From Macrostomum lignano (lineage: Eukaryota): DNA of 64,000 bases. Position 1 is the stretch's first letter. Each line of letters opens with the position of its first letter. The notes below the pieces were generated by a model. That model did not search any database and was not told the DNA's origin. It saw only the letters and a list, made by a program, of their open reading frames with translations. Location of the stretch: contig NIVC01003507.1 of the NCBI GenBank assembly GCA_002269645.1, positions 30,404 to 94,403 on the forward strand, given 5' to 3'. Positions 2,524 to 62,500 of this stretch are shown here, one piece after another. Made by a program: the position numbers and the translations under genes.

Positions 2524-3052
2524 GACTAGATAGCTAACAAGAGTGACCAGATAAGCTAGCGAGAGTGACTAGATAGCTAACCAAAGTGACCAGATACGCT
2601 ATCGAAAGTGACTAGACAGCTAACAAGAGTGACCAGATAAGCTATCGAGAGTGATCAGATAGCTAGCGAGAGTGACCAGATAGCTACCGAGATTGACCAG
2701 ATAAGCTATCGAGAGTGACCAGATAGCTAACAAGAGTGATCAGATAGCTATCGAGAGTGATCAGATAGCTAACAAGAGTGACCAGATGAGCTATCGAGAG
2801 TGATCAGATAGCTAACAAGAGTGACCAGATGAGCTATCGAGAGTGATCAGATAGCTAACAAGAGTGACCAGATGAGCTATCGAGAGTGATCAGATAGCTA
2901 ACAAGAGTGATCAGATAGCTATCGGGAGTGATCAGATAGCTATCGGGAGTGATCAGATAAGCTATCGAGAGTGATCAGATAGCTTACAAGAGTGACCAGA
3001 TGAGCTATCGAGAGTGACCATGTAGCTAACAAGAGTGATCAGATAGCTACCG
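2524..3052. repeat. ~21-bp minisatellite (gatagctatcgagagtgacca / gatagctaacaagagtgacca)
   Basis: Direct tandem periodicity; the unit contains the palindrome GATAGCTATC. Confidence 0.9.
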
Positions 3053-3273
3053 AAAGTTTAGGGCAACTAGGAGTGCAAAGTTATTTACAAGGAGGCGTAT
3101 TTCTGTATCCTGAATTTTACGGTACTACAAGCTTAATTTTTGTTTGTGGTTGGGTATTTCAAATTTATAAGCTAGGGTTTATAGAAAGAGTGCTTCTAGT
3201 CTAGATCGCTTGAGTCGACAGTGTACACTTATTTTGATAATCCTCATCGATTTTTATTTCAACAACTCCGCAG

Positions 3274-3755
3274 CCCAGTGGATCTCCGACGTTGACTGTT
3301 TTCTAAGCCTGCACGATCGCAAACTGTGCGTACTGGGCTTCTGCACTCTGCTCACCTGCCCGCCAGACCGCATGCCCGCCTGCTTTGCGGCCGCTCTGCC
3401 CAGCCTCCTGCCGCAGTTCCTGGCCCTGTTCCACGGCTTGAAGGCCGCCTACCAATTGAAAAGCCGCCTAGAGAACGAAGCCGAGGACGACGACGACGGC
3501 GACGGCGATGCCGAAGCGTCTGGCGAGGACGACAATTCGGCTGTTAGCGGCGACGGTCTCAATGCTAGTAACGGCGGCGGCAAGCAGCGCGGCGGCCGGC
3601 GCTCCAACGGTAAAGCCGACGCCGATGATGAAAACAAAGAGCTGGACAGCGACGAGGACGATATCGATCCGGAGCAGGTTGGCTTCTTCATTTCTATTAG
3701 TTAGTTAGTTAGTTAGTTGATTAGTTAGTTAGTTAGTTAGTTAGCTAGTTAGTTG

Positions 3756-3800
<45 letters not shown>

Positions 3801-3802
3801 CC

Positions 3803-3856
<54 letters not shown>

Positions 3857-3858
3857 CC

Positions 3859-3897
<39 letters not shown>

Positions 3898-3916
3898 AAG
3901 TTAGTTAGTTAGTTGA

Positions 3917-3948
<32 letters not shown>

Positions 3949-3986
3949 CTAGTTAGTTGGTTAGTTAGTTAGTTAGTTAGTTAGCC

Positions 3987-4025
<39 letters not shown>

Positions 4026-4026
4026 A

Positions 4027-4070
<44 letters not shown>

Positions 4071-4071
4071 G

Positions 4072-4108
<37 letters not shown>

Positions 4109-4170
4109 CCAGTTAGTTAGTAAGTTAGTTAGTTAGTTAGTTAGCTAGCCAGTTAGTTAGTTAGTTAGCC

Positions 4171-4216
<46 letters not shown>

Positions 4217-4391
4217 CCAGTTAGTTAGTTAGTTAGTTAGTTTGTTTGTTTGTTTGTTTGTTTGTTTGTTAGTTAGCCAGTTAGTTAGTTAGTTAGTTAG
4301 TTTATTTGTTTGTTTGTTTGTTTGTTTGTTTGTTAGTTTGTTTGTTTGTTAGTTAGTTAGTTAGTTAGTTATTTAGTTAGCCAGTTAGTTG

Positions 4392-4432
<41 letters not shown>

Positions 4433-4434
4433 CC

Positions 4435-4492
<58 letters not shown>

Positions 4493-4494
4493 CC

Positions 4495-4536
<42 letters not shown>

Positions 4537-4542
4537 CTAGCC

Positions 4543-4584
<42 letters not shown>

Positions 4585-4586
4585 CC

Positions 4587-4619
<33 letters not shown>

Positions 4620-4714
4620 GTTAGTTAGTTAGCCAGTTAGTTAGTTAGTTTGTTTGTTTGTTTGTTTGTTAGTTTGTTTGTTTGTTTGTTTGTTAGTTAG
4701 TTATTTAGTTAGCC

Positions 4715-4772
<58 letters not shown>

Positions 4773-4774
4773 CC

Positions 4775-4807
<33 letters not shown>

Positions 4808-5684
4808 GTTTGTTTGTTTGTTAGTTAGCCAGTTAGTTAGTTTGTTTGTTTGTTTGTTTGTTTGTTTGTTTGTTAGTTTGTTTGTTTGTTAGTTTGTTAG
4901 TTAGTTATTTAGTTAGCCAGTTAGTTGGTTAGTTAGTTAGTTAGTTAGTTAGTTAGCCAGTTAGTTTGTTTGTTTGTTAGTTTGTTTGTTAGCCAGTTAG
5001 TTAGTTAGTTTGTTTGTTTGTTTGTTTGTTGGTTAGTTAGTTAGTCAGTCAGTCAGTCAGTCAGTCAGTCAGTCAGTCAGTCAGTCAGTCAGTCAGTCAG
5101 TCAGTCAGTCAGTCAGTCAGTCGGTCATTCTGATAGATTTACTCAGTTTTCACACCTTCAGCGCGCAGTCCTGTCTTTATTAATCACGAGTAAATATCAG
5201 TATCACAGTAAAAACGAATGCACTTCAACAGGAAGAGTACGTCGCCAGGCTAAAGCAGCTGGACAAAGCAGCTGGCGGCGGCGATAACGGCGACGACGAG
5301 GGCGACGAGGACGACGACGATGAAGAATACGAGGACGAGGACTTGGTGAATCCCATGTACGAGACTAAGCTGGACGAGGACGACTGTGAACTGGACGAAT
5401 ACGCGGTGTTCAAGTCCACCCTGGAGAGCCTGGCCGCCAGTCAGAGCCAGGTGTACACCCAGCTGTTTGGCGCGGCCAACGAGCAGCAACGTAGCCAACT
5501 GCAGGAGGTGCTGCACATGGCCGAGCTCCGCGTCAACGCCAGACAGTCAAAGAAGATTGGCCAATCAGGCGGTTACACTTTTTCCCAGACTGCCGTGCCG
5601 ATCGCTTTTGATTTTGGCGTCGGCGGCGGCGGCGGCTCTGCGCAAACCTTTCAAGGCTTTTCGTCTGGCGCACCCAGGCAATGA
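3274..5684 (+). CDS. IPO7: Importin-7/8 family, last two exons (3274-3677, 5232-5684); upstream exons lie outside the window
   Basis: QWISDVDCFLSLHDRKLCVLG, acidic ELDSDEDDID, DEYAVFK and SGGYTFS...FDFG match the IPO7/IPO8 C-terminus. The GT-AG intron 3678-5231 is phase 0. IPO7 and IPO8 cannot be separated by eye. Confidence 0.85.
3697..5122. repeat. (TTAG)n microsatellite with TTTG and TCAG sub-arrays, in the importin intron
   Basis: Direct reading of the sequence. Confidence 0.97.
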
Positions 5685-6029
5685 TAAAATCGGCCAGTGT
5701 GCGACCGCGTGTTGGTTTCAGTTATTATGGGGCTTAACATTACCCGTCAGCTATACATTACTGGTAAGCTAACCCACTTCTGCCTTTGCCTACACCATTC
5801 TTTCCTCTTATAATTATTATTTTCTCTCTTTAAAAATACTGCATACTCGAGCTCTTTCCTGCTGTTTCATTATTATTCTTCAAAACCTTTGCGCGTTTCT
5901 CTGACGCTTGTTTTGTTGTTTCTCTTTGTTCTTTGTTGCTGCTTTTCCTGACGATTGACGATCCGGTCTGTTGCTAAGTTATTTAGTTAAAAAATCGGCT
6001 CTTTACCAGCTTTCTAGAAATCGATCATA

Positions 6030-6846
6030 CACCAACTTTCTGAGAATTGGTCCTTTGCCAACTTTCTAAGAATTGGTCCTATGCCAACTTTCTAAGAATT
6101 GGTGCTTTGCCAACTTTCTAAGAATTGGTCCTTTGCCAACTTTCTAAGAATTGGTCCTTTGCCAACTTTTTAAGAATTGGTCCTATGCCAACTTTCTAAG
6201 AATTGGTGCTTTGCCAACTTTCTAAGAATTGGTCCTTTGCCAACTTTCTAAGAATTGGTCCTATGGCCAACTTTTTAACATTCGGTCCTATACCCAACTT
6301 TCTTAAAATCGCTCCTATACCTACTTTCTAAGAATCGGTCCTATACCAACTTTCTAGGAATCGGTCCTATACCAACTTTCTAAGAATCGGTCCTATACCA
6401 ACTTTCTAGGAATCGGTCCTATACCAACTTTCTAAGAATCGGTCCTATACCAACTTTCTAGGAATCGGTCCTATACCAACTTTCTAGGAATCGGTCCTAT
6501 ACCAACTTTCTAGGAATCGGTCCTATACCAACTTTCTAGGAATCGGTCCTATACCAACTTTCTAGGAATCGGTCCTATACCAACTTTCTAAGAATCGGTC
6601 CTATACCAACTTTCTAGGAATCGGTCCTATACCAACTTTCTAAGAATCGGTCCTATACCAACTTTCTAGGAATCGGTCCTATACCAACTTTCTAGGAATC
6701 GGTCCTATACCAACTTTCTAGGAATCGGTCCTATACCAACTTTCTAAGAATCGGTCCTATACCAACTTTCTAGGAATCGGTCCTATACCAACTTTCTAGG
6801 AATCGGTCATATACCAACTTTCTAAGAATCGCTCCTATACCAACTT
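6030..6846. repeat. 26-bp minisatellite (ccaactttctaagaatcggtcctata)
   Basis: About 30 tandem copies with variant blocks. Confidence 0.95.
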
Positions 6847-8194
6847 TAAGAGTCAATCCTAATCGCTTTTTTAAGTTCTTTAAGTATCTGTAGGTATCGC
6901 GTTTCTCATTTATATCATCATATTCATAAATAATGAAAAGTCTGCTATTTTGGCAATCCGAATCAAGAAGCAAGAGCTCCGGTTACACTATTTGCGCGTA
7001 AAAGTTCTTCTGTGCTGCTACAAGAAATTTATATTTTTTGTTTTGTTATAATTCTGTACTGCTCCTGACGTTCTTTTGACTGTGTAAAGATCAAAACAAG
7101 TCGGTAGGTTTCCATGCTCTTGTCTTCTTTTTACCAATTTTATTAATAAATAGAATTGGATTCCAATGGCGATTCCAGCAAGACTGATCATATCAATAAC
7201 AGTTTTCATAATTTTAAATTAATGTTTTTAATCTTATATATTATTGTAGTGTAATTTACGAGTAATGTTATTATAACTGAAGCCAGTGCACCTACACCTT
7301 TTGCTTGCTTACTTGGAATTCGTTCTTGTTTTTTCCTTAAAATATTATTAATATTGTTACTAATGGGTGGGTGACCTAATTTCCTAACCAAAACTATTTG
7401 CCCCTTATATCACCCAATTATGATTGTCCGTTTTGTTGTTATATTATAATATGAATAATTATAAACTCCATCACAATAATGTTTCTCTATTCAACTTCTA
7501 ATAATATTTTTGAAGCCTAAATATAGTTAAAATTTACTTCGTGTTTTTGTCGCCTTTAACTTCGATTTGATCTACTGTTAGTAGGCTAGCGGCGCATATT
7601 GTTATTTTTTTTCAATTTTTGGGCTTTAATGAATGCTTTAACATAGCGGTATTTTTAACACTGGTGTAGACTGCTATTCCGCCTTATTACAGTTTATATC
7701 TGAGTTTCTAGTCTTGCCCCTAGCGTATGCTGTTGATAAGTTATTTAACAAGCTATTAGTGTCAGCTAAAAAAGGAAAACTTCGCCGGCCAAAGGGCTGA
7801 TTGGGCTAAAAATGATTGATAATGTGTTTTTTTCAAGAATAAAGTTAATATATTCAATCTACTCTACTAGTACATTAGTAGCATCTATGCACGGTATGTT
7901 TCATTTTTATATATAAACTTATTATTATTTATTGACCTATTGGCGTTACCCGCTGTTTGAAGAGTGTTACGCATATGTGTTGAATATCAATTGAATGATT
8001 GATAAATATTTCTGTCTAAAACCGTTTTTTCAGTTTCTCAATTTGCGTTGCTAGGTTGCTTCCGTGTTGGTAAATTAACAATTGTTTATCTATTAAATAC
8101 AATCGTGATCGGTCGCCTACTGTGGACAAAAAAATTTGTTTGATTTTACTTCGCTTTATTATTGTATGTTCTAGCTTATATGAGGTCTAAGTTC

Positions 8195-20035: not shown

Positions 20036-21320
20036 CCTGAACAAGAAAACAGCAACAAATGAACTAAAAAACGACTACAAGTGCTCAAAATACTCTCCAC
20101 CGGCATTGATACAGGCTTGCATCCTGTGAAACCAGCTGTCGAAGCAATGCCGCCAATCCTCATCCCGGAGCTCCTCGATGATGTTTTTGAACTCATTTAC
20201 AGCTTCTTCCGGTGAAGAAAAAACCTGGCCCTTCAGAATCTCCTTGCACTTCGGAAACAGAAAAAAGTCGCACGGTGCCAGGTCTGGACTGTAAGCAGGG
20301 TGAGTCATCAGCTGGACCCCACAGTCAGCCAGAAACTCCAGAGTTTGAGCCGCCGTGTGCGCGCTGGCGTTGTCGTGGTGCAGAAGCACCCCACGCATTC
20401 CGCACCTTGGGCGCCTCTGGCTCACAGCAGAAAAGACCTTGGGCAGGCAAACCGTTGTGTACCAGTCAGCGGTGACTGTCTGGCGATCTTCAAGTGAAAC
20501 GGAAGCCACATGCCCAGTGCGCATGAAGAAACAGGCCACCATCTGCTTGCCGACACTCCGGCTGCGTCGAAACTTTGTGGGGCTGTCCTCGTCTCCAAAG
20601 GTCCACATGGCTGACTGGCGCTTGCTTTCGGGGTCGTATTGATAAATCCAGGTCTCATCGCCCGTGAGGATGTCCCAGATACGCCGGCTGGTCCCGGATT
20701 CGAATTTCTGCAGCATGAATCGGCACCAAGCCACCCTGGTGTCCTTCTGCACGTCCGACAGCTGATGGGGGATCCACCGGGAAGCCAGCTTCCGCACTCC
20801 AAGGTGTTCGTGCATAATGGCGTGCACACTCCCCGATCCAATACCGATCTCCTGCTGGATCTGCTGGTAGGTCACTCGCCGGTCAGCGGCAATCATGCTG
20901 GACACAGCGCAGATATTTTCTGGAGTCACTGCGTCACAGGGTCTCCCGGATCGATGTTCATCTTCGAGGCTTTCTCGACCTCGGCGAAACTCAGCGAACC
21001 AGTTTTTGACGGTTGCGTATGAAGGACATACATGGGTGAAAACGTTCTGTAAAGTTTGATACGATTCGGCCGAAGACTTGCCTTGCTTGAAGTGCAAGTA
21101 AATCATTGCTCTGAAGTCGCGATTTTCCAGCTTCATTGTTGAATTGAAGAACTCAGGGGGTGAACTGACTTTAACTCGCTGCAGTGGACTCAAAAGTGGC
21201 TGCTTCTGTTTGAAATTTTTGCTGCGATACTTTTAAAAGTTGGTCTTTACCATAGACAAATTTCATGCTTCTACGTCTCGTGGATCCTACTCAGGCTAAA
21301 GACTTTCTGAGTGACCCTCG
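20011..21320 (-). mobile_element. Full-length mariner (DD34D) transposon, 1310 bp
   Basis: 30-bp TIRs, 28/30 identical (cgagggtcactcagaaagt..ttagcctga). TA TSD at 20009-10 and 21321-22. Intact transposase ORF. Confidence 0.96.
20075..21136 (-). CDS. Mariner transposase, 353 aa, apparently intact
   Basis: WIPHQL, TGDETW, HHDNA...YSPDLAPCD with D34D spacing. Likely start MKLENRDFRAMIY at 21136. Confidence 0.95.
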   Translation of the reverse strand: MKLENRDFRAMIYLHFKQGKSSAESYQTLQNVFTHVCPSYATVKNWFAEFRRGRESLEDEHRSGRPCDAVTPENICAVSSMIAADRRVTYQQIQQEIGIGSGSVHAIMHEHLGVRKLASRWIPHQLSDVQKDTRVAWCRFMLQKFESGTSRRIWDILTGDETWIYQYDPESKRQSAMWTFGDEDSPTKFRRSRSVGKQMVACFFMRTGHVASVSLEDRQTVTADWYTTVCLPKVFSAVSQRRPRCGMRGVLLHHDNASAHTAAQTLEFLADCGVQLMTHPAYSPDLAPCDFFLFPKCKEILKGQVFSSPEEAVNEFKNIIEELRDEDWRHCFDSWFHRMQACINAGGEYFEHL

Positions 21321-44954: not shown

Positions 44955-45977
44955 ATGCTGTCTTCTTCTTTTGCACTGCAGTTGCTTCTCAGCATCGTTT
45001 TTGGCGTCATCCTGGTCCTGGGAGCGATCGGAAACTCGGTCGCTCTCATTGTTGCGGTGATTCAGAAAACTCCAAACAATGTGGTCAACATCTACCTGGC
45101 TAACCTGGCTGTTGCCGACCTGCTTCACCTTGTCTCAATTGTGCCGCTCATCCTGGCAACGGGAAGTGGATGGCAATGGGGAAGAGGCCTGTGCCAGATC
45201 AACTACACGGTCAAATATACCAGCTTTACTGTCATCGCCTTCACCATCACCGCAATGGGATTCGACTGCTACGTCGACATGGTGAGGCCTGAACTTTACA
45301 GACTGCGCAGTCCCCGATTTGTGTGGGGCCTCATGCTGGGCCTGTGGATCCTGAGCACCTCAGTTATGAGTTGTATTGGCGCCTATGCCACAGTCAGCCC
45401 ATCGACCGGAAACGGAAGTGCTATCATTGACTACTGCGGCCACTTCTTGGACAATTACAACAGTGATACGGCAGACCAACCCTCGTCGAGCTTCGGTTTA
45501 AAAATCGGTGCTATCTGCATCTGGCTTGTCCTGCCGTTGGTTCTTTTCTTGGGTTTCTACCGCTGCATCCGGCGCAACACGGACGCTCAGGCGCCTGGCG
45601 CAGCGTCGCGTTTTAAACGCGTCCTGCTCCCAGTGATCGTTTTGGCTGCGAGCCACTCAGTCTGCACCCTGCCGCAGTGGCTCTCTATGTTGCTGAGTTG
45701 TTGGAAACTCATCCCCGAGCACGTGTCTGATTCCTTAACTCGCTTCTCGGCGCTACTTGTCTACCTGAACAGCGCCTGCAGCACAGTGCTCTACGCCTGG
45801 CTCAACCCGTCGCTTCGTCGAGGCCTGCGTCGCATCTTCGTCTGCCCCTGCCGCTGGCAAAATGACCGACCAGCCGCGGCGGAGTACTCTGAAAGTCGCG
45901 TAGCTGACGACGAAACCGAGGAGGCCATTGCTCTTCGCACGCTTAGCAACCAGCTTGTGGACGAAATGTTCGGCTGA
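44955..45977 (+). CDS. Class A (rhodopsin-like) GPCR, peptide-receptor-like, 340 aa; possible extra upstream exon 44770-44864
   Basis: Seven hydrophobic helices, GN in TM1, NLAVADL in TM2, W-WG..LC, DCY, TM7 tyrosine. A phase-2 donor (44865) and acceptor (44911) could add an N-terminus. Confidence 0.9.
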   Translation: MLSSSFALQLLLSIVFGVILVLGAIGNSVALIVAVIQKTPNNVVNIYLANLAVADLLHLVSIVPLILATGSGWQWGRGLCQINYTVKYTSFTVIAFTITAMGFDCYVDMVRPELYRLRSPRFVWGLMLGLWILSTSVMSCIGAYATVSPSTGNGSAIIDYCGHFLDNYNSDTADQPSSSFGLKIGAICIWLVLPLVLFLGFYRCIRRNTDAQAPGAASRFKRVLLPVIVLAASHSVCTLPQWLSMLLSCWKLIPEHVSDSLTRFSALLVYLNSACSTVLYAWLNPSLRRGLRRIFVCPCRWQNDRPAAAEYSESRVADDETEEAIALRTLSNQLVDEMFG

Positions 45978-50026: not shown

Positions 50027-50686
50027 ATGACAACAATCTCGGAGCGGAGTGCTTTGTGGTGCATAGTTGGAGTCGTATTATTAGGCGCCGCACAGATTGT
50101 TCACTGCAATAGAAACTATTATAGCGATGGTTACAGCGGCAGCAGATACGGCGATGGACAAGGCGGCTACGGCGGTGGATGGGATGACTACTATGGTGGT
50201 GGACGGAGTGACTACAGCGGTGGTCGGAGTGACTACAGCGGTGGACGAAGTGGCTACAGCGGTGGACGGAGTGACTACAGCGGTGGACGGAGTGACTACA
50301 GCGGTGGACGAAGTGACTACAGCGGTGGACAGAGTGACTACAACGGTGGACAGAGTGACTACAGCGGTGGTCGGAGTGACTACAACGGTGGTCGGAGTGA
50401 CTACAGCGGTGGTCGGAGTGACTACAGCGATGGACGGAGTGACTACAGCGGTGGACGGAGTGACTACAGCGATGGACGGAGTGACTACAGCGGTGGACGG
50501 AGTGACTACAGTGGTAGACGGAGTGGCTACAGCGGTAGACGAAGTGGCTACAGCGGTGGACGGAGGGTCGGTGAAGAAAGCTACTCTGGAAACGACGCTT
50601 CTTCATCAGGAAACAACGGTGGCGGCTATAAGTTTAAGCCCAATAGCATTTTCCACTATGCCGGAAAGAATACTGGAAAGTATTGA
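50027..50686 (+). CDS. Secreted Gly/Ser/Tyr/Arg-rich repeat protein (17 x GGRSDYS-type), 219 aa
   Basis: Signal-peptide-like N-terminus, unique flanks in frame with the repeat, silent-site variation between units, AATAAA at 50812. Confidence 0.75.
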   Translation: MTTISERSALWCIVGVVLLGAAQIVHCNRNYYSDGYSGSRYGDGQGGYGGGWDDYYGGGRSDYSGGRSDYSGGRSGYSGGRSDYSGGRSDYSGGRSDYSGGQSDYNGGQSDYSGGRSDYNGGRSDYSGGRSDYSDGRSDYSGGRSDYSDGRSDYSGGRSDYSGRRSGYSGRRSGYSGGRRVGEESYSGNDASSSGNNGGGYKFKPNSIFHYAGKNTGKY

Positions 50687-51066
50687 ACTGCAATGCAGTT
50701 CGTTTTGGAGAGTCGTTAAAAAACCAAATCTGCACTGAAGCAACTTGATACTGCACTGTGTTAAGTCGGTTGTCTCTCTTAAATTAATTGTCAAGGCACT
50801 ACCTAGAAAGAAATAAAACGTTTTGAGTTACCGCAATGTTGTGGTCTGTGTTTCACTTTCTCGAAGATGCTCAGAATATTTAAAATTGATGTAAATTCTG
50901 TTCAATTCACTATGATTTTAAGGTTAAGGATTAGCTTAGTTGCAAGAATACGAAATCTAGTATTGTCTTTTTTGCAATGCGACTATTTGATGCGACTATT
51001 TGATGCATTTTTGCAAACAATTTTATATTCTAATGAGAATTGCTGAAAAGGTTTGAGGTTTTAGGC

Positions 51067-51120: not shown

Positions 51121-52175
51121 TTTGAAAGTTCACGATAGCCTGCTCTAGGCTTTTGTCTCTTCTCAGCTCTCCTCTCTCCCCACAAGTCTTCTCTTTAATT
51201 TTTTCTGTCCTTTCTTCTCTCATCCCATCCATCCTCTTATCTCATCGCTCTTCTCTACGCTACCCTCATAAAAGATTGCGCAACACTCCCGCTTGCCAGA
51301 AGGCCTAGTCCTAAGCTGAACTCTCTATTAGGACTAATAGGACAGACTTAATTTGAGGCCCAGCAGTCTTCAGTTAGGACACCTAACACGACTTTACTCT
51401 TGACTCGTACTTTTATGGCTCCGGCTCCTGATGCTCCAATATACTGTACAGTGTACACTCTCCAACGTGTGATTGAGTTCACACAATCACACCACGGCCC
51501 ACGCGGTTCTTGTCTCAATTGTGGGGTGACTCGTCAACTAACTAAGCGATAAACTTGTTAAATTTGGTAGGTGGGGTGCCTGAGCTGAGCCTGCAACGCG
51601 CCTGGGCGCGCGTCAGAAAGCAAGTTACTCAGAACTCAGAACTCGGTACAACTCACTGTCTGCCAGCAAGTCTGCCAGAACTGTTTAGCGGTTTAGAAAT
51701 TCAGCGCTCGACACTGGGCCAGCCCATGGACTCCTAGATTCTACTTCCGAGATCTTGTAAATAAAGTCGTCCATGGCTAGTGGAACTTCGCTATACGTGC
51801 GTTGGAGCTTTTGTTTTAGCTTCTGGGCTGAATGTACGAGTACACACACCTATGTGCCTCCAAGCCCCAAACCTTTCTAATCCTCCGCACGCCCGCCGTC
51901 CCAACAACCCCTTGCCTTGGAGGTTTGAGTGGTGGGGTGTCCGCACATTCACCCAACCCCCCGCCCCTCTATCAGACAGACTACTACAGCCGCTATTTCA
52001 TTCGAAGTTTCAACCGTTTCTGTTAGCCACAGACCACAGTGAAACCGATATAATGGCAGCTTGGCACTAGTGTGTAGTCTGAATGCTGCATGCTATTTAC
52101 TGTTTTTTTTCAGTTAAACTAGCGCTAGTGATACAATTAATAGTAGAAATTTACTCTACAGTCTAAATATTAAGC

Positions 52176-55100
52176 ATGGCCGCTGCTGTCGTCGCAGCCG
52201 CCGCCCGCCGCAGCTGCCAAACCACATCGAAGACGCCGCTTTGCATCGAGTTCTACGACTTCTGCCGCAAAGGCGATGTAAGCCAGGTTCAGTCCTACCT
52301 TAGTGAGGGCCTGCCTGCTGACTGGACTAATGAGAGAGATCGCAATAGGAGTTTGCTGATGGCCACAGCCTGGAAGGATAGCGAGGACGTCTGCCGGCTG
52401 CTCATTGAACAGAAAGCTCCCCTGGACCATCAAGATAGCTCGGGGCTCAGTGCGATGCACATCTGCGCCAAGCAGAATTCGATTCGCGTAGCCAAGTTAC
52501 TATTACAAGCCGGTGCCAACGTCAACTTGCTGGCTGAGAACGACATTACCGCGCTGATGATTTGTGCTGACTTGGGCCACACGGAGCTAGCCGAAGTGTT
52601 ATTAAAACAGCCGACAATCAATCTCGACCAGCAAAGCAGTCGCGGATTCACAGCTCTAATGAAGTCCGTGTTTGAGAACAGCGTTCAGCTAGCTCACCTG
52701 CTCATCGATCGTGGCGCCAAACTCGACCTGGCCTCTAATAGCGGCTTCACCGCGCTGCACCTATGCGCCCAGCTGGACAGGCGCGAGATCGCACAGCGCA
52801 TCCTGGCCAAGGCACCACCTGAGATGGTTAACCAGCCAACTAAGCCGGAGTTCAAAGGCAATACAGCGTTAATTTTAGCCTCGCTAAATGGCCACGTAAA
52901 GATGGTGCAGCTGCTGCACGAGAACGGTGCCGATCCTAATTTTGCCAATAGCGAGGGTTGCACAGCCTTGGACCAAGTGTCTGGCAGCGATTCGAAGGAG
53001 CTGCTGAAACTGCTGCAGAGCTGGAGTAGTCAGAGCAGGAAGTGAGTTTTGTTAGCGTTGATTTGATTGCATGGTACAAGTTTATTTTTAAGATAAGGCC
53101 GTATATATGAGACATATCTGCACTGCACCTAAAGTGCAGATGCTTGATTGCTGTGGAGAATTGTTAATTCTTTCGGGAGCAATCACTGGAGCAACAATTG
53201 ATTCTTTCAGTGGGCAATAATCGATTCTCTCGGTCGGTGGGCAATCACTGGAGCAACAATTGATTCTTTCAGTGGGCAATCATCGATTCTCTCGGTCGGT
53301 GGGCAATCACTGGAGCAACAATTGATTCTTTCAGTGGGCAATCATCGATTCTCTCGGTCGGTGGGCAATCACTGGAGCAACAATTGATTTTTGGTGGGCA
53401 TTTGCAGTGTGACCACACCTGCGTTATTTTATAGTTTTCTGCGCTATTTTTTTTCTGCTCAACTGCGCTACTATTTTGGTTTTACAGTTACTTTTTGATC
53501 ATTTCTGCGCTAAAAAAATTTTGAAACTATGAAGCTTCTTTTCTTGTCTTTTCTGCTCATTTTTTACTTAGAAAAGATCGGTAGTTGATCAGTAGTTGAA
53601 ACAAGAATGTGCATGCAAATGATTAACTTGCACTTGCACATGTATTTAGTTCAGACTGCATTGCTTCAGCCAAAAGCAATTTCTTCAGCCAAAAGCAATT
53701 TCACGAGCTTTTCTTTGCCTTCAAGTTCATCGTCATCAACTCAGGCTCAGCGTAATCAGTGATGCCAAGCACAAATCAGCGATGAAGCATCTCAAGCAGT
53801 CCAATTCTGGGCAACAGAGCCAAATAATAATTGTACATTTTTTCCTCTAATGAAGAATCTGCTTGAGACCCGGATGCTGACAAACTACAAAGAAGGATGC
53901 TTGTTCCGGTTCACAGATGAGCTGGCGAAGGTTATCCCTGTCGCCTCCCCGGACAGTGAAATTGCTGAAAACTATGCTTGCGCTAGGACGAAGACGAACT
54001 ACCTGATCTGCCTGTCGAGAATGCTACATCACTATGTATCCTAGCTTGCATCCATTATTTGGCTATTTTACTATTTTAGTTTCTGAAAAAGCACATATAG
54101 CCATTAAAACACTCCAGAATCCTGCTGCGCTATTTTTTACTGCTCTATTTTTTATAAATTCTTTGTGGTCACACTGGTGGGCAATCATAGATTCTTTTGG
54201 TGGGCAACCATTGGAGAAATAATTAACTCTTTTAATGGGCAATCTCGATTCTCTCACACAATAGAGATATACTCATACTGCGCTGCATATTTCCATCTTT
54301 TCTAGTAATAAAAACGACATGCTATATAAACACACTACTTTAAGCATACTTAATCACTTTGCAGCAAACCGACAGCACCGGCAGGCCTCAGCCTTGCCGA
54401 CGCCATTCGCAAAGACGATCTAGAAAGCGTGCGGAAGCTGGCGAAATCGGAGACAGTGACCAACGTAGATAGAACAACAGGCTGGACGCCTCTGATGCTG
54501 GCTGCCGGACTGGGCAAGACGGAGTCATTGAAAGTGGTACTTTCGCTAATCGGCACCAGTAGTAGTCTCGACTTTCATGTCAATAGACAGGCGGAAGACT
54601 CAACTAAAGCAACTGCCCTGCATGCCGCTGTCCAGTGCGGCAGTGAGCCCTGCGTCAAGTTGCTGTTGCAAGCTGGTGCCAGCCTGGCTGTGTTAGACGC
54701 CCAGGGTTCAACTCCGCTGTCCTTGTGCGCCGACCTGGGCTCGGCCACGGATGTCGCAGAGCTAATTATTGAACGAGCCAGCGCGGACGAATTGATGAAA
54801 CCAGGTGCTGACGGCCGGCTCTGTCCGGCCAATTTGGCCGCCGTCCGTGGCCATCTGGACGTGCTGCGCCTGATGCTCAATCGACTTCGTAAACTCGACG
54901 ATAATTCAAGTCGCCAAACATGGCTGCCACAGATTCTCGAAGAAGCCAAAGCGGCTTGGCAATTCGAAGCGGCAAATGCTGTGCTAGAGGAAATGTAAGA
55001 CCATAAATTGACTTTAATTGTCTAGTCTCTAGGCCCTTATGCGAAGCTAATTACGAGCTCGTACATGTACAAGAAATTGCCTCTAAAATGTAGCGACAAC

Positions 55101-57115
55101 GTGAAGTGAATAACTATATGTCATGCTATAAAGAAATGGAAATGTCTTGTGAGTAATAACTAAAAATGTAAGCTGTCAAGACTTTGGCTCCCATTAACGC
55201 TATCGCATTCCACTCTCGCACTTCTCCCAGGCCTAAAAACGCGAAGAACAATGAGGAGCTGACAACTGCCAGACTGTTTAAGGCAGCGATGGATGCCAAC
55301 CCGGAAAAGGTGAAGGAACTGCTCGATTCTAGCCAAGCGGTGCGAGATAGCATCAACAAACGAAGCCAACAGGATCCAGGATGGACCGCTTTGATGGCTA
55401 GCGCCTGGAATGATGATGAAAGTACTTGTAAGCTGCTGCTAGATCGAGGCGCGGATCCCAATGTCACGGAGCAAAAGCTTGGCATCACAGCGCTGCACAT
55501 CGCGGTGCAGCAGAACAGCCGTCGGGTTGCCAAAGTCCTCTTGGACCAGAAGTCCATCGGCCTCAATGCCAGGAGCAAAGACAATCGGACTCCGCTGATT
55601 CGAGCAGCTTGGCTTAACCATATGGACATCGCCAAGCAACTGTTAGACCGGCATGCCAGCGTCAACGCCCAAGAAATTGATGGATTCAGCGCGCTGCACT
55701 TTTGCGCCCAAGAAAATCTGCTGGAGCTAGCGAAACTGTTGATCAGTCACGATGCCGACCTGGAACTGCAGACAAGCTCTAAGAAGAACTGCAACACCGC
55801 TTTCACCCTAGCCGCGGTAAAGGGCCACACGGACATGCTGGAACTGCTAGCCAATGTTGGGGCCGATATCTACTACAAGAGCTCGCAGGGCGACGCCATG
55901 GATCTGGCCAAGCGGGCGAAGAGAACCGCGGCTATTGAGATGCTGGTCAAGCTCGACAGGCAGCGAAAATGCAGCTGGGAGGCCGCTACGGCGCCAATAC
56001 CGTCAAGGTTAGATAGCTTTTACAAACGAGGAGACTACCTCGTTGCTCATTCATTTTTAGATTTTTATGCAATCCAGCTCGTATCGTGAGGTCATATTTT
56101 CTCAGTTTTATAAGAAATAAATTTTGCTTGGCTGAATTTTTAAAATCTTCCTCATTATCTGTATCTCTGTCTAATTTTTTACAGCAGCACCACCAGCAAT
56201 GAGACAGCAGGAGTCAAGATGCAGCTTGACGCTGGGAGTGCTCAGGTAGCTGAAGTACCTTCAGTGGAGATGGACAGTTCGAACTTGAACTCCAGTGTTG
56301 TGCCGCCTATATGCGGCTACCAGTACTGCATGCGCTCCAATCCGCGTGGAATGTGCGTCATCATCAACAATGAGCAGTTCTCAGGCGAATGTGAATCTCG
56401 ACCCGGCTCAAGGAAAGATGTAGCCAGTCTGGAGCGACTGTTTAAGGACACACTCAAGTTTCGGGTTCAAGTCCACCAGAATCTGGACGCGTGCGACATT
56501 CTCGCCCTGATGCGATCGCTAGCTGCCCGCGATCGTCACACGAAATTTGACTGTTTCGTTGCTTTCATCATGTCGCACGGTGAATACGACCGCGTTCTTG
56601 GCTGCGACGGCGAGTGGGTCGCCCTAGATGACATGTTCGCGCCATTCTACTGCTGTGACTCTCTGCAGCAGAAGCCGAAGCTGTTCTTCCTACAGGCCTG
56701 TCGGCCTCTCGGCGTCGGCGCCAGCGTGACAGCCGAGTCAAACGTCGACCAGCCGGTGTCGTCTGTTGGAAGCAACAACAGCAGTCCAAGCAATTTCGAT
56801 GCCTCCAACAGGCGGTTAAACAGACAACTCTCCGAGAAGCTTGACTTTCTATTTGCCTACTCGGTGACTAGGGGTGACTACGCTCTGAGATGCCCGACGA
56901 CAGGAAGTATTTACATACAAAAATTGTGCGAAGTGTTCAGAGAAAACTACAAGACTCATCACCTCTGCACTATGCTTAATATGGTGCGCCAAACGCTGGG
57001 TCGCCTCCCGATGTACGTCAATCAGCAACCCCAGGAGCCCATGTTTAACTTGCCATCCGAGACCACGCAGCTGCGGGGCGAAGTCTGGTTTAAGGATCTG
57101 GAGAACGACCAATAG
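52176..57115 (+). CDS. Ankyrin-repeat caspase: exons 52176-53041, 54365-54994, 55231-56007, 56185-57115; 1067 aa
   Basis: Three ANK exons (~15 TALH/TPL-type repeats plus caps) and a p20/p10 caspase exon (IINNEQF, IMSHG, KPKLFFLQACRP, GSIYIQ). Donors AA|GTGAGT, AT|GTAAGA and AG|GTTAGA pair with phase-2 acceptors. Exons total 3204 nt and stay open. Confidence 0.85.
53170..53400. repeat. 62-bp minisatellite in ANK-caspase intron 1; degenerate relative at ~54170-54260
   Basis: About 3.5 copies of gggcaatcactggagcaacaattgattctttcagtgggcaatcatcgattctctcggtcggt. Confidence 0.85.
53850..54030 (+). pseudogene. hAT-like transposase fragment in ANK-caspase intron 1
   Basis: DELAKVIP..SPDSEIAENYACARTK resembles the PDS.IA....C.RTK motif of hAT-related transposases (from memory, not searched). 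Confidence 0.45.
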
Positions 57116-57464
57116 CAGCTCTAATTGTCTGGAGTTCCAGGATGATATCACTTTAAACAACAGTCTGAAGTTTGTGTGGGGTTTGTGTTCTTTTAAACAT
57201 ACCGAATTTCATGCAGTTCCGTTCCGCTAAAATCACGTGAATAATTTTTACAATAGCAATGGCCAACCAAATATTGATTGATATATATTGCCAATTGTAC
57301 AAAATCTTAATTCAACTTTTTTACTCAAGCTTCATCTGAATGTCAAATTACTCGTATATGGTGCTATTCACAGTAATATTTTATAGTTTAATAGTAATAA
57401 TAATATAATTGATTACACCTGCCTCAATTTGGCCAGATGTGCAACCGAGAGCTCATTGCAGCTG

Positions 57465-57706
57465 CTATATTGCGCGGCGCATCTGAAGGCTAAGTACGTC
57501 TGTTCAGTCCAAGGACTGGGGGTCGTCACACACACCCTCAATTACCCCAGCTAATGCTGGCACCCATTTTACAGCTGGGTGAACTGAAGCAATGCAGAGT
57601 TAAGTGTCTTGCTCAAGGACACAAATTGTTCCGAGTGGGATCGGGAATCGAACCCCCGACCTTCAAGTCGGAAGTCCGACGCTCCAACCAATAGGCTACA
57701 ATCTCC
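57465..57706 (-). mobile_element. tRNA-derived SINE with a V-SINE-like central domain
   Basis: Minus strand has an A box TAGCCTATTGG and B box GGTTCGATTCC, then gtgtccttgagcaagacacttaac and cacccagctgtaaaatggg. Confidence 0.7.
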
Positions 57707-58294
57707 TTAATTCTGTAGCTCGGGTGGATCGGGTGGCAGGTGACTCGCTGCCTGCAGCAGCTCAAGGGGCGGCTCAACAGCGTGGAGCAGCAGAAAGACC
57801 TCATTGACAGTAGTCGCCAGCGATGTCGGAACATACTTCAAAGTGGGGAGCTATTGGTGGGAGGGCACATTGCACATGATTTTTTTAATCTAAGAACACC
57901 CAAACTCCTGCTGTTATGTCAGTTTGTGACATTAGTTGTGACAACCAGACCAATATTCAATTCTGTGTTGGAAGTGGCCAAAAGTCTGAAAAATGTTCGA
58001 ATTTTCAACTAATTCAAACATTGCGCAACTGCACTGCACTATCAATTTATTTAGCAAATATCTCAAATGAATGAAATTTGCCAGGGCAAGACCAGTAGTT
58101 TTCTGGATCTCTTGCCTGCCTCCTGCCTGGCTGCCTGCCTCTTGGCGTTGTCTTTTTATTATTTTATCTGACGGCATTTCAGTGCTTTTATTTGCAGTAC
58201 CCTGAGGACCAAATGTGGCCCGAAAAGCCTCTCTATCCGGCACTTGGGTCCTTTGAATCTTCACAATAGCAATCCTGCCCGCTCGATGTTTGTG

Positions 58295-58559
58295 TCTTCT
58301 CAGCTCTCTTCTCTCATCTCTCTTCCCATGTTCTCCTGTTCTCTCCTCTCCTGTCCTCACCTCTCTCCTCTACTCTCCTCTCCTCTCATCTTCTCACCTC
58401 TCTCCTCTCCTTTCCTCTCATCTCCTCACCTCTCTCCTCTCCTCGCCTCTCCTCTCCTCACCTCTCTCCTCTCCTCTCATCTCCTCTCCTCTCCTCTCCT
58501 CTCATCTCACCTCTCTCCTCTCCTGTTGATCATCTCAAGATATATAGATATAGATAGAT

Positions 58560-58612
<53 letters not shown>

Positions 58613-58621
58613 ATAGATAGG

Positions 58622-58656
<35 letters not shown>

Positions 58657-58665
58657 ATAGATAGG

Positions 58666-58731
<66 letters not shown>

Positions 58732-59546: not shown

Positions 59547-62500
59547 CTAGTTCTTCTTAGCCACGGACTTGGTCGAGTCTCGCAGTTTCCTGCGACTCCC
59601 ATAATTGCCTTCGTTTTCGCATTTTGGCGTCGGCGTGCTCACTTCGTCGCGGCCCGGCCTTGGGAAATTGTGATAGACGGGCACCTCGGCGGATGACGGA
59701 CCATCGCCCGCGGTCCACTGGTCATAGCCTGTCGTGTTGTCTCTCATTATGTCTTGAATTCCGACTACGCTGACGTTGGACGAATTTAGATCCACTCTAG
59801 TGTGCCTGTTAACAGTGCCGCAGCACAGCATCGCTATGGCAGCCCCTCGGAACTCCCAGTTTAGCAAGCCGAGACAGAGTAGGACAAAGAATCCTTGACA
59901 AGCGTTCAGAATGACGAAAACGTACTGCACGGGTAGGGTGTACCATAGAGTCTGCGGAACAGCGAACAGCCAGGCGGCGGTCAGTAGTGGCGCCAGCAAG
60001 GCGCACTCGTGCGACTGGTGCTTAAGCTCGGTTTGAATATCGCGTCGCTTGATAGCCTGCTGGCTGAGGTTGCACAAGACTATCAGAGTGACCAAAATTG
60101 ACAGTAGGCCAAACAGTAGCAGCGGTCCCAGGAATGACCAAATATAGATACCATCCAGCCAGCACTGGGGGCCGTAGCCAAACGACTGAAAGTTGACCCC
60201 GGCGACAACGGCCACAATAACCACGGGAAGGATCCATGCTATTGGAAGAAGCCATTTCAATCGACCGATAATGACGCCTTTGACTACAGCGTGGAACAGC
60301 CAAATTGATGCGGCTAGCAGCATCGCTAGGCCAGCGACAAAGAACAGATGCATAACAATAGAAACCGCCTTGCAAAATTCGTCGCTTTGTTTTGCTATTC
60401 CAGTCAGTAGAAAGCTTAGCTGACCAATGAAAATTGCTCCGGCAAGGTTCAGATACAGAATGTACAGTTCATTGTGCAGCTTTTTGTCGCGAGCAACAAT
60501 TATTATAAAGAAGATCAGACACAAGAGCGAAATTCCCGTGAGAATGTACTTCAAGTAAGCTAGAATTATCTCGTGTATGTTGTTGTCGTATTCAGGCGCA
60601 GGTTGCATCAGCACTGCAAAGCTAGTCAGGTGGTTACAGCTGCATGTTACGCTTTTCTCGTCCTCGTACAGCTTGACACAGCCTTCGGTTGACCACATGC
60701 CTCTGCCGAAGGCTGAGCCACTAGCCTTTCTTGGGTCCCAGAAGACGCATCGAGTTTCAAGCTGCATTTCTTCTTTATTAATTTGACTTTTTATGTTAGG
60801 CACAAACAATTGTAGAGTTAAATTTACAGGCTGCTCCATTTTCCTTGTCATTGCAACGGGAATGCTAGTTTTAATGGATACTACTCGACTGTTGACGGCT
60901 AGCACAATGCTACCGTTTGTAGCACTAGATAAGACGGTTTCATTCGTAGCAACGTTAGGGAGCAGGTCGCTAACCTGATTATAAACAACGCAGGCAACTT
61001 TGACTTCAGTTCCAGCCTGTGTTAGACTAGTAAATAAGCTGATAGGAAGGAGCACGGTGTCGGTTGACTGCATCCACAGGCTGTGGGTTTGTTCCGTATA
61101 GCGCAGTGCGTCAACTGGGCGATCAATGCAGCTCGAGCTAATTAGTTGAGTGCTCCAGTGCATCAGACCCTGTGTAAAGGTCACAGAAGAGCAGGCGGTG
61201 GGCAGCTGGCCAGCGAGACGGAGTGCCAGAGACTCGATTGGGCCAAGCATCGCTGCTGGATTGAGCTTTCCAGAGTTGATCTGAGGTCGGAGTTGGTCCG
61301 CAAACTTTTTCTGCATCACGGCACTGAATGCTCGACTAAATGAGCGCAAACTAGTGGCCAATGACTCGTTGCTGGTTCCGTCTGATTTTACTTTTAAGTT
61401 TGCCGTAATGCGACTCAGAATATCAAACGCTGACTGAGCGAATTCGACACTCGTTCCTTTGGCATCCGCAGTACCAGCTATCACTTCGCAAGCGGAATCG
61501 GCCTCAGACTGGACTGAAAACCTACGACTTGAGTTGGCAATACTTGCTATATTGTCAAATTTATCGTCTTGGCATATTCCATAGATGTAAACGCTTTGAC
61601 AGCTGCCCACAATGCAGGTTGTAAGCAGGCTATCCAGTTCAGAGGCGCAGTTACCTGTAAGCAGCTTCTTGTTCTTGGGCGGGTCCAGGCAATCAATCGG
61701 CGGTTCGTTCCAAAATACCAGATCGCTCATCAGCATAACTGCAGAAGGTGAGCCAAGCACAGCATTTGAAACTGTGGATGGCGCTAAATTCTCGCTACTG
61801 AACTGAGTCGACGCCACGACTTGGACGCCATTCAAATAGAGTTCGACGACTGCCTTAGTAACACTAACTGCCAAGTTGAACCAGGATCTAGTATGAATCT
61901 GCTGCTCAATAGAGCTGTCTCCAAGAGTGACTTGAGAAAGTTTTCCTGCAATACTCAGCTCCACACTAATTTTCACGATGTTTGAAGAAGCGGATTTCTT
62001 CTTTGCTCGAATGCGCAGCCCTTGGTTAGATGGATAGCCGGCCCGAAGAACATCCACGTACTCTTCCGTACCGATGGATTGAATCTGCAGCCAGAGCGAT
62101 ATTGTGAAGCCTTTAGGACAACCGGATCCAGAGAAGAGGCACACTTCAGTGCCCAAGTCAACAGATTCGGCTGCAACGAAGCGTCTACTTCGATTGGCTT
62201 TATTTGCGTGGTTACTGTTTCCGCAGAATGCATGGGAACATGAATGGTTTGCCTATCGTAGCAATTTGCGTCAAGATCTGTGGAAAGCTCGTCTGCACTG
62301 CCTAACGGCAAGTACTTCAGCATGATATCGCTAAAACAAGCGGCCGCTGCGTTTTTACTCTTGTCATTGGGTCGGCCTAACAAGCCCGCTGTGTAGTTAC
62401 CAATGTCATTATCTTCATTCCAACACAAAGTGCTTGCGTTTTCAAAATATGTAATAATGTAGTCATCGGCTTTAAGTAGTATACTGGCACTGGCGTACCA

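Follow-up and report, generated by a model that had tools for sequence, protein, structure and literature searches.

Do the four open reading frames at positions 52176-57115 of a 64,000-nucleotide (nt) stretch of Macrostomum lignano DNA (assembly GCA_002269645.1, contig NIVC01003507.1, positions 30,404 to 94,403; hereafter the window, numbered from its first letter), three of them coding for ankyrin (ANK) repeats and the last for a caspase, belong to one gene, and if so, what sort of protease would it encode? On balance we favour the answer that a single gene specifies an ANK prodomain of ~730 residues, a linker and a complete caspase-3/7/8-type domain, the product being an active cysteine protease specific for aspartate (Asp) and under the control of its ANK part. 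The joining of ANK repeats to a caspase is not in itself new; what is new is its presence in a free-living flatworm, contrary to what is stated in PMC11463336.

Four open frames and a single spliced gene

The four forward-strand frames splice into one continuous frame of 3204 nt (866 + 630 + 777 + 931) that comprises 1067 codons and a TAG stop with no internal stops. The three introns are all of the GT..AG type and all in phase 2:

52176-53041, + strand: exon 1, with the start codon and ANK module 1 (amino acids (aa) 1-288 and 2 nt of codon 289)
53042-54364, + strand: intron 1, 1323 nt, GTGAGT...CAG, phase 2, GC content 0.40, with a 62-bp tandem repeat inside
54365-54994, + strand: exon 2, ANK module 2, aa 289-498; symmetric 2-2, 630 nt
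54995-55230, + strand: intron 2, 236 nt, GTAAGA...CAG, phase 2
55231-56007, + strand: exon 3, ANK module 3, aa 499-757; symmetric 2-2, 777 nt
56008-56184, + strand: intron 3, the ANK-to-caspase junction, 177 nt, GTTAGA...CAG, phase 2, with an AATAAA at 56116-56121
56185-57115, + strand: exon 4, with the disordered linker, caspase p20, intersubunit linker and p10; TAG at 57113-57115

Reading through donors 1, 2 and 3 leads to a stop after 1, 1 and 27 codons, respectively. The GC content is 0.53-0.57 in the exons against 0.32-0.40 in the introns. In a homeolog, on contig NIVC01000059.1, the four exons agree in length and the splice sites are unchanged, with introns of 1795, 228 and 166 nt; between the two copies the exons differ by 57 substitutions and not a single gap column over 3204 nt, whereas the introns have 551 gap columns. 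The contrast in base composition, together with this confinement of gaps to the introns, puts the gene structure far beyond chance.

The spliced protein is, residue for residue, GenBank PAA51086.1 (BOX15_Mlig008805g1, a "hypothetical protein" of this same contig and assembly), and it is 97% identical to PAA92194.1; the homeolog is likewise 97% identical. The BOX15 models are not ab initio predictions, having been built by genome-guided assembly of RNA-seq data (StringTie, TACO), and a further step, TBONE, cuts transcriptional units at experimentally observed trans-splice and poly(A) sites (PMC5730564). An older, independent and truncated model from the ML2 assembly (UniProt A0A1I8G5A3, 859 aa) has the same three junctions, so that the joining of exon 3 to exon 4 is carried both by the RNA-seq-derived GenBank model and by a second annotation. 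An exact look-up of the protein matched two GenBank contigs and none of the Logan transcript contigs. An earlier note on this DNA, made from the letters alone, had thus been right that the four frames form one 1067-aa protein, but this protein was by no means hidden, since an identical model was already archived in GenBank and UniProt. Its splice coordinates and their common phase also hold; its description of all the sites as consensus does not extend to donor 3, because GTTAGA departs slightly from the M. lignano rule of GT[G/A]AG for donors and CAG for acceptors (PMC8629364).

Could the locus nevertheless produce two proteins, in the manner of M. lignano operons or through alternative processing? 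Read-through of donor 3 would give an ANK-only protein of 757 + 27 residues, ending at a TGA (56087-56089) and with poly(A) addition after the AATAAA of intron 3, while trans-splicing to the acceptor that ends at 56184 would yield a second mRNA, encoding a stand-alone caspase of 298 aa from the in-frame ATG at 56219. The AATAAA is also present in the homeolog and lies 63 nt before the acceptor; it is the sole AATAAA/ATTAAA hexamer near the 3' half of the gene, none being found in the 885 nt that follow the stop codon (57116-58000). Moreover, donor 3 is the weakest of the three, spliced-leader trans-splicing does occur in M. lignano, with ~15% of the genes in operons, and the ~95 nt that separate the read-through stop from the acceptor resemble the ~100-bp peak of intergenic distances in these operons (PMC8629364). 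However, 56007 is spliced to 56185 in the transcript-based GenBank model as well as in the independent one from ML2, and TBONE, built to cut at evidence of trans-splicing or polyadenylation, made no cut here (PMC5730564). The frame of the junction is kept in a paralog, P0250, that is only 55-70% identical and that lacks Met770, the one residue at which a stand-alone caspase could start. With 68% A+T in intron 3, a single AATAAA is unremarkable. Finally, the other M. lignano ANK caspases are all single proteins. In one of them, Mlig001045, one exon (aa 207-515) codes both for ANK repeats (to ~398) and for the first ~100 residues of the caspase (from ~416); with the two in the same exon, no splicing is needed to join them, and the ANK-caspase fusion is real in this family. 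Such a two-product scheme seems to us quite improbable, and the locus is almost certainly a single spliced gene in which three cis-spliced phase-2 introns join three ANK exons to a caspase exon.

Trans-splicing may still concern the gene at its 5' end, where there is a candidate acceptor for a spliced leader or for a 5' untranslated exon:

52108-52113, + strand: acceptor-like TTTCAG (TTTTTTTTCAG/TT), 63 nt 5' of the ATG, which fits the M. lignano trans-splice motif [T/C]TNCAG (PMC8629364)

The alternative that the gene is an artefact of annotation or assembly, or a pseudogene, is hardly credible. It could draw on the high redundancy of the Mlig_3_7 assembly and on the older models of related genes, some of which are fused to their neighbours (the 2049-aa model of P0250 includes a PIRC1_2 domain). 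Against it stand intact 3204-nt frames at two loci on different contigs, with a ratio of nonsynonymous to synonymous substitution rates (dN/dS) of 0.33 and no exon indels. We consider it effectively refuted by the identity to PAA51086.1, by this ratio and by the restriction of indels to introns.

The repeat in intron 1 (53179-53400) consists of 3.6 copies of its 62-bp unit with 97% matches; the first intron of the homeolog is 472 nt longer and has more copies of it.

Anatomy of the protein

ANK repeats take up about residues 20-750. Pfam places ANK families over residues ~30-750 (Ank_2, E 2.7e-81) and Peptidase_C14 (PF00656) at residues 812-1046 (E 1.9e-47), and at E ≤ 0.01 there was no match to a CARD, DED or Death domain in the 1067-aa protein; the earlier description of ~750 aa of ANK repeats in the place of the CARD or DED is thereby borne out. 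A strict consensus scan counts 15 repeats and inspection by eye about 19-20, grouped into three modules that match exons 1-3. Exons 1 and 3 are colinear over 195 aa with 32% identity. A duplication would be compatible with this similarity, which is however inseparable from that of ANK repeats in general, and we make no such claim.

The ANK region is followed by a disordered linker of ~55 residues (742-800), p20 (~801-934), an intersubunit linker (935-962) and p10 (963-1067). An AlphaFold2 (AF2) model of the caspase part, from an alignment of 123 sequences, has a core with a predicted local distance difference test score (pLDDT) above 90, residues 1-44 and 179-205 of the modelled fragment being disordered. 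Foldseek comparison of this model returns caspase-7, -3 and -8 on top (caspase-7: E 1.5e-23, template modelling score 0.88). In the full-length AF2 model the two linkers are again disordered and the N-terminal 740 residues are all helical. Its ANK region is of low confidence (mean pLDDT 63.8), because the alignment there is just two sequences deep, and we have employed this model for the linker boundaries only.

Catalytic residues and candidate cleavage sites

The closest sequence of known structure is also caspase-7 (E 2.8e-30), and Arg830, His889, Gln928-Ala-Cys930 and Arg993 align with its catalytic and S1-pocket residues. The histidine, cysteine and arginines that the earlier note had picked out are thus all where it placed them:

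56399-56401, + strand: Arg830 (SRPGS), first S1-pocket arginine; aligns with the Arg of 'vRnGT' in caspase-7, in a column at least 90% conserved
56576-56578, + strand: catalytic His889 (MSHG), in a column that is invariant in alignments of 123 and 81 sequences
56699-56701, + strand: catalytic Cys930 (QACRP), in an invariant Cys column; the residue two positions on is Pro, not Gly
56888-56890, + strand: Arg993 (YALR), second S1-pocket arginine; aligns with the Arg of 'SWRSP' in caspase-7, in a column at least 90% conserved
56273-56275, + strand: Asp788 (VEMD/S), candidate site for prodomain removal by a putative cleavage; the Asp is kept in P0250 (FEPD/Y)
56747-56800, + strand: intersubunit linker with Asp946 (ESNVD/Q) and Asp963 (SNFD/A), candidate sites for a putative p20/p10 processing; disordered in AF2

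By alignment, the S1 pocket for Asp is complete (Arg830, Gln928 and Arg993). Assignments to the metacaspases, paracaspases or CHAT proteases were dropped, the best matches by sequence and by structure all being animal caspases. The Pfam match, the alignment with caspase-7 and the predicted fold all agree in making this protein a member of the caspase family (MEROPS C14A).

The pentapeptide around the catalytic cysteine is QACRP rather than the canonical QACxG; its fifth column is Gly in at least 90% of the 122 aligned homologues. The homeolog shares the Pro, and P0250 has QGCRI. Is the protein then a catalytically impaired pseudo-caspase that would serve as a scaffold or decoy in the manner of c-FLIP? 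These departures from a near-invariant motif are what speaks for it. On the other hand, His889, Cys930, Arg830 and Arg993 are all kept in the gene, in its homeolog and in the diverged paralog, and dN/dS for the caspase domain is 0.38; functional caspases with a residue other than Gly in the fifth position exist, for example Drosophila Dredd. We regard a pseudo-caspase as improbable, and judging from the conserved residues, the protein is probably an active Asp-specific protease.

Selective constraint on both parts

Both the ANK and the caspase parts are under purifying selection. Against the homeolog, dN/dS for the ANK part is 0.31. The more distant paralog P0250 (UniProt A0A1I8I0Q1) is colinear from residue 17 as far as the caspase domain extends, the junction included, with identities of 66%, 55% and 71% in the three ANK exons, 63% in p20, 51% in p10 and 37% and 29% in the two linkers. 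Since the identities in the ANK exons are comparable to or higher than those in the protease, the ANK region is at least as constrained as the protease itself. Within the poorly conserved linker Asp773 is kept in P0250, as is Asp788.

ANK caspases in and beyond the flatworms

The name "ANK caspases" comes from a survey of 60 lophotrochozoan genomes (Krasovec et al. 2024, PMC11463336, Genome Biol Evol evae204), which credits their first observation, in Schistosoma, to Lee et al. 2014 (Trends Parasitol 30:75) and adds a single annelid example, Alitta virens. That paper describes the clade as "specifically restricted to parasitic platyhelminths"; free-living flatworms are said to lack such genes, and ANK caspases are placed as the sister group of DED caspases and suggested to be initiators with an activator yet to be identified; FADD is reported lost in all flatworms. 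Our literature search returned this paper as the only work on the subject; it found no functional study of ANK caspases, and no mention of Mlig008805, Mlig008053, Mlig019067 or Mlig001045. The earlier note had raised the possibility that this architecture is already a well-characterised family. It has indeed been named in flatworms, and in a broad architectural sense the window protein is one of these ANK caspases, but it has been characterised functionally in no study that this search found.

To judge their distribution, 1.84 billion representative sequences were searched by HMMER with the caspase domain and the best 150 matches were screened for ANK repeats; beyond its top match, a first search with the full-length protein was dominated by generic ANK proteins. 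Among the best 150 matches there are at least five groups of ANK-caspase genes from M. lignano: the window gene with its homeolog, P0250, Mlig001045, Mlig000705/009621 and Mlig019067. The same combination occurs among them in the monogenean Cichlidogyrus casuarinus (KAL3319427.1) and in the jellyfish Sanderia malayensis (EP00794_P009253, a tandem ANK-caspase-ANK-caspase model). The caspase domain of the schistosomatid Trichobilharzia regenti protein VDP98924.1 is 48% identical to that of Cichlidogyrus, in a model that has no recognisable ANK region. A profile search with seven ANK-caspase domains, limited by its word index, returned 19 ordinary caspases and no neodermatan sequences. Mlig019067 (NIVC01000010.1, gene 3001-6919) is a 599-aa ANK caspase that carries the UniProt name 'Caspase-8'. 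Other unusual partners are found among the closest caspase domains: a protein kinase in P0323, and a 'GT4-conflict' glycosyltransferase in P0294 and P0368, the latter also with a COR-B domain.

Neighbor-joining (NJ) trees were calculated for 258 caspase domains, two of them neodermatan, under five settings with 100-200 bootstraps. The Cichlidogyrus and Trichobilharzia caspases group at 100%, with Mlig019067 added to them at 72-88%. A pair at 100% is also formed by the window gene and P0250, but the deeper nodes of this caspase-domain phylogeny are unsupported: the pair groups with Mlig001045 and Mlig000705 at 34-41%, and both a clade of all flatworm ANK caspases and one uniting the pair with Cichlidogyrus, Trichobilharzia and Mlig019067 appear at 1-2%. 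Considering that deep caspase nodes are essentially without support throughout these trees, such values are not a rejection of a single clade. Nor do the introns give a signal of orthology, their positions being different in the window gene, in its paralogs and in the gene of Cichlidogyrus.

From these groupings Mlig019067 is the likely orthologue of the parasite ANK caspase and the best candidate for it in a free-living species, and the stated restriction to parasites would therefore be contradicted. The window gene and P0250 appear as a separate subfamily with a long prodomain, whose fusion may be either shared with the parasite clade or independent. That ANK caspases are ancestral to Macrostomorpha and Neodermata, and hence date from the early Rhabditophora, is a real, though slightly less than even, possibility. 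On this proposal Macrostomum would have a family of at least five groups, including a subfamily with ~20 repeats, and in a lineage from which FADD is reported lost these might serve as apical caspases that sense a ligand or adaptor.

How might the ankyrin part act?

In the mechanism that we propose, the protein would be a zymogen whose protease cuts after Asp, and the ANK solenoid, standing in the place of a CARD or DED, would be its module for protein-protein interaction. Through it the zymogen would be recruited to a partner or platform, or alternatively held in check, and activation would follow from proximity-driven dimerisation together with cleavage at Asp788 in the linker and at Asp946/Asp963 between the subunits. 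A role of the solenoid in recruitment or activation is a tentative proposal, drawn by analogy. The precedent of the fish protein Caiap (PMC5662874) shows that an ANK array can bind and stabilise an active caspase. The earlier note had imagined a sensor-protease or scaffold-activated caspase outside the apoptosome and death-inducing signalling complex (DISC) routes; this is plausible, and the same speculation is found in PMC11463336. A sensor-protease acting in immunity, as that note also suggested, may be one version of the recruitment idea.

Several points weigh against an ANK-controlled, active protease encoded by a single gene. The caspase domain scores no better against the DED initiators than against the effector caspases, and among solved structures its nearest matches are two effectors, caspase-7 and -3. 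The departure of QACRP and QGCRI from the Gly column makes a reduced or altered activity possible. The full-length AF2 model, with its low-confidence ANK region, is uninformative about contacts between the ANK and caspase parts, and the AATAAA and in-frame ATG near the third junction may leave alternative processing conceivable.

The first of these points also raises the alternative of an effector-type caspase, which would be cleaved by an upstream caspase and whose ANK part would be a module for localisation or substrate selection, tethering it to a membrane, to the cytoskeleton or to a substrate. Besides the closest solved structures, many of the closest sequences are caspase-7 and caspase-3, and there are Asp sites in both linkers. 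Long prodomains, however, are a hallmark of apical caspases, which argues against an effector, as does the placement of ANK caspases beside the DED caspases in PMC11463336. ANK modules that are as conserved as p20 between the paralogs would fit either role, and ANK repeats do commonly recruit substrates to catalytic domains (PMC5662874). Such an effector is, in our view, unlikely, although it deserves to be taken seriously, and we retain the ANK-controlled protease as the preferred reading.

What the family means

The ANK-prodomain caspases are the one branch of the apoptotic machinery that is specific to flatworms. In schistosomes they have come up as potential drug targets, and their existence has been put down to adaptation to a parasitic life. 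That M. lignano has several groups of intact and constrained ANK caspases, one of which clusters with the parasite genes, means that the tie to parasitism is not exclusive. The family is now available in an organism with transgenesis, RNA interference and good genomic resources, where the partners of the ANK region and the cell-death phenotype can be tested. If the ancestral origin is true, the association of ANK caspases with the emergence of parasitism, as drawn in the literature, would be overturned, and the pathway would be testable in a free-living model. Less is gained for the window gene alone, a correctly annotated but unnamed member with an unusually long prodomain.

Neighbourhood of the gene

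Further features noticed in the window are the following:

50027-50738, + strand: upstream neighbour, a 188-aa GenBank model with a hydrophobic, signal-like N-terminus and no Pfam match
59547-62156, - strand: large exon of an adhesion G-protein-coupled receptor (GPCR; Laminin_G_3, GAIN, GPS, 7tm_2), convergent with the caspase gene
44955-45977, + strand: intronless 340-aa open reading frame of a rhodopsin-family GPCR (7tm_1, E 3.9e-27)
20075-21193, - strand: mariner/Mos1-like transposase open reading frame (HTH_48, Transposase_1, DDE_3)
58332-58731: adjacent (TCTCC)n and (AGAT)n microsatellites

The upstream neighbour, 1.4 kb 5' of the caspase gene, could be part of a shared transcriptional unit. 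It contains about 19 copies of the 7-aa sequence GGRSDYS, encoded by a 21-bp tandem repeat (50167-50565), and the copy number varies, as the homeolog model is just 140 aa long. The long low-complexity open reading frames on both strands at 58332-58731 are due to the microsatellites.

Comparison with known systems

The nearest known counterparts are the ANK caspases of parasitic flatworms, in the same phylum, Platyhelminthes, in which an N-terminal ANK prodomain likewise replaces the CARD or DED and precedes p20/p10. They differ from the window gene in their hosts, M. lignano being a free-living macrostomorph, and in the prodomain, which is of ~750 aa here against ANK matches at residues 76-295 in the 799-aa Cichlidogyrus protein. 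Moreover, in the NJ trees the window caspase domain is united with the monogenean and schistosomatid sequences at only 1-2%, unlike that of Mlig019067 (72-88%). Within M. lignano, all the ANK caspases combine ANK with Peptidase_C14, and P0250 is colinear over its full length, whereas Mlig001045, Mlig000705/009621 and Mlig019067 are shorter (599-723 aa), have other exon structures and group with the window gene weakly or not at all. The jellyfish Sanderia malayensis and the annelid Alitta virens present the same combination in other phyla; in the NJ trees the Sanderia caspase domains stand apart from the flatworm genes, and both cases are most simply seen as independent fusions.

Among the classical caspases, the DED type (caspase-8/10) has a similar plan, in which a long N-terminal interaction prodomain is connected to the caspase domain by a flexible linker that contains Asp sites, and the best database matches include caspase-8 sequences of fish (31-36% identity). 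The window protein differs in having no death-fold domain, and a DISC-type recruitment would not be expected in it because of the loss of FADD reported for all flatworms (PMC11463336). Effector caspases 3 and 7 are its best solved-structure matches by sequence and by fold, with all the catalytic and S1 residues aligned. It differs from them in the ~800 residues that precede p20, effector prodomains having a few tens of residues, and in its QACRP in place of QACRG. Finally, Caiap, an inflammasome adaptor of fish with a CARD and 16 ANK repeats, also couples a long ANK array functionally to a caspase: the ANK domain of the zebrafish protein binds active caspase-1 in trans (PMC5662874). Caiap has no protease domain, whereas the window protein carries array and protease on one chain, and the two are likened through generic ANK repeats only.

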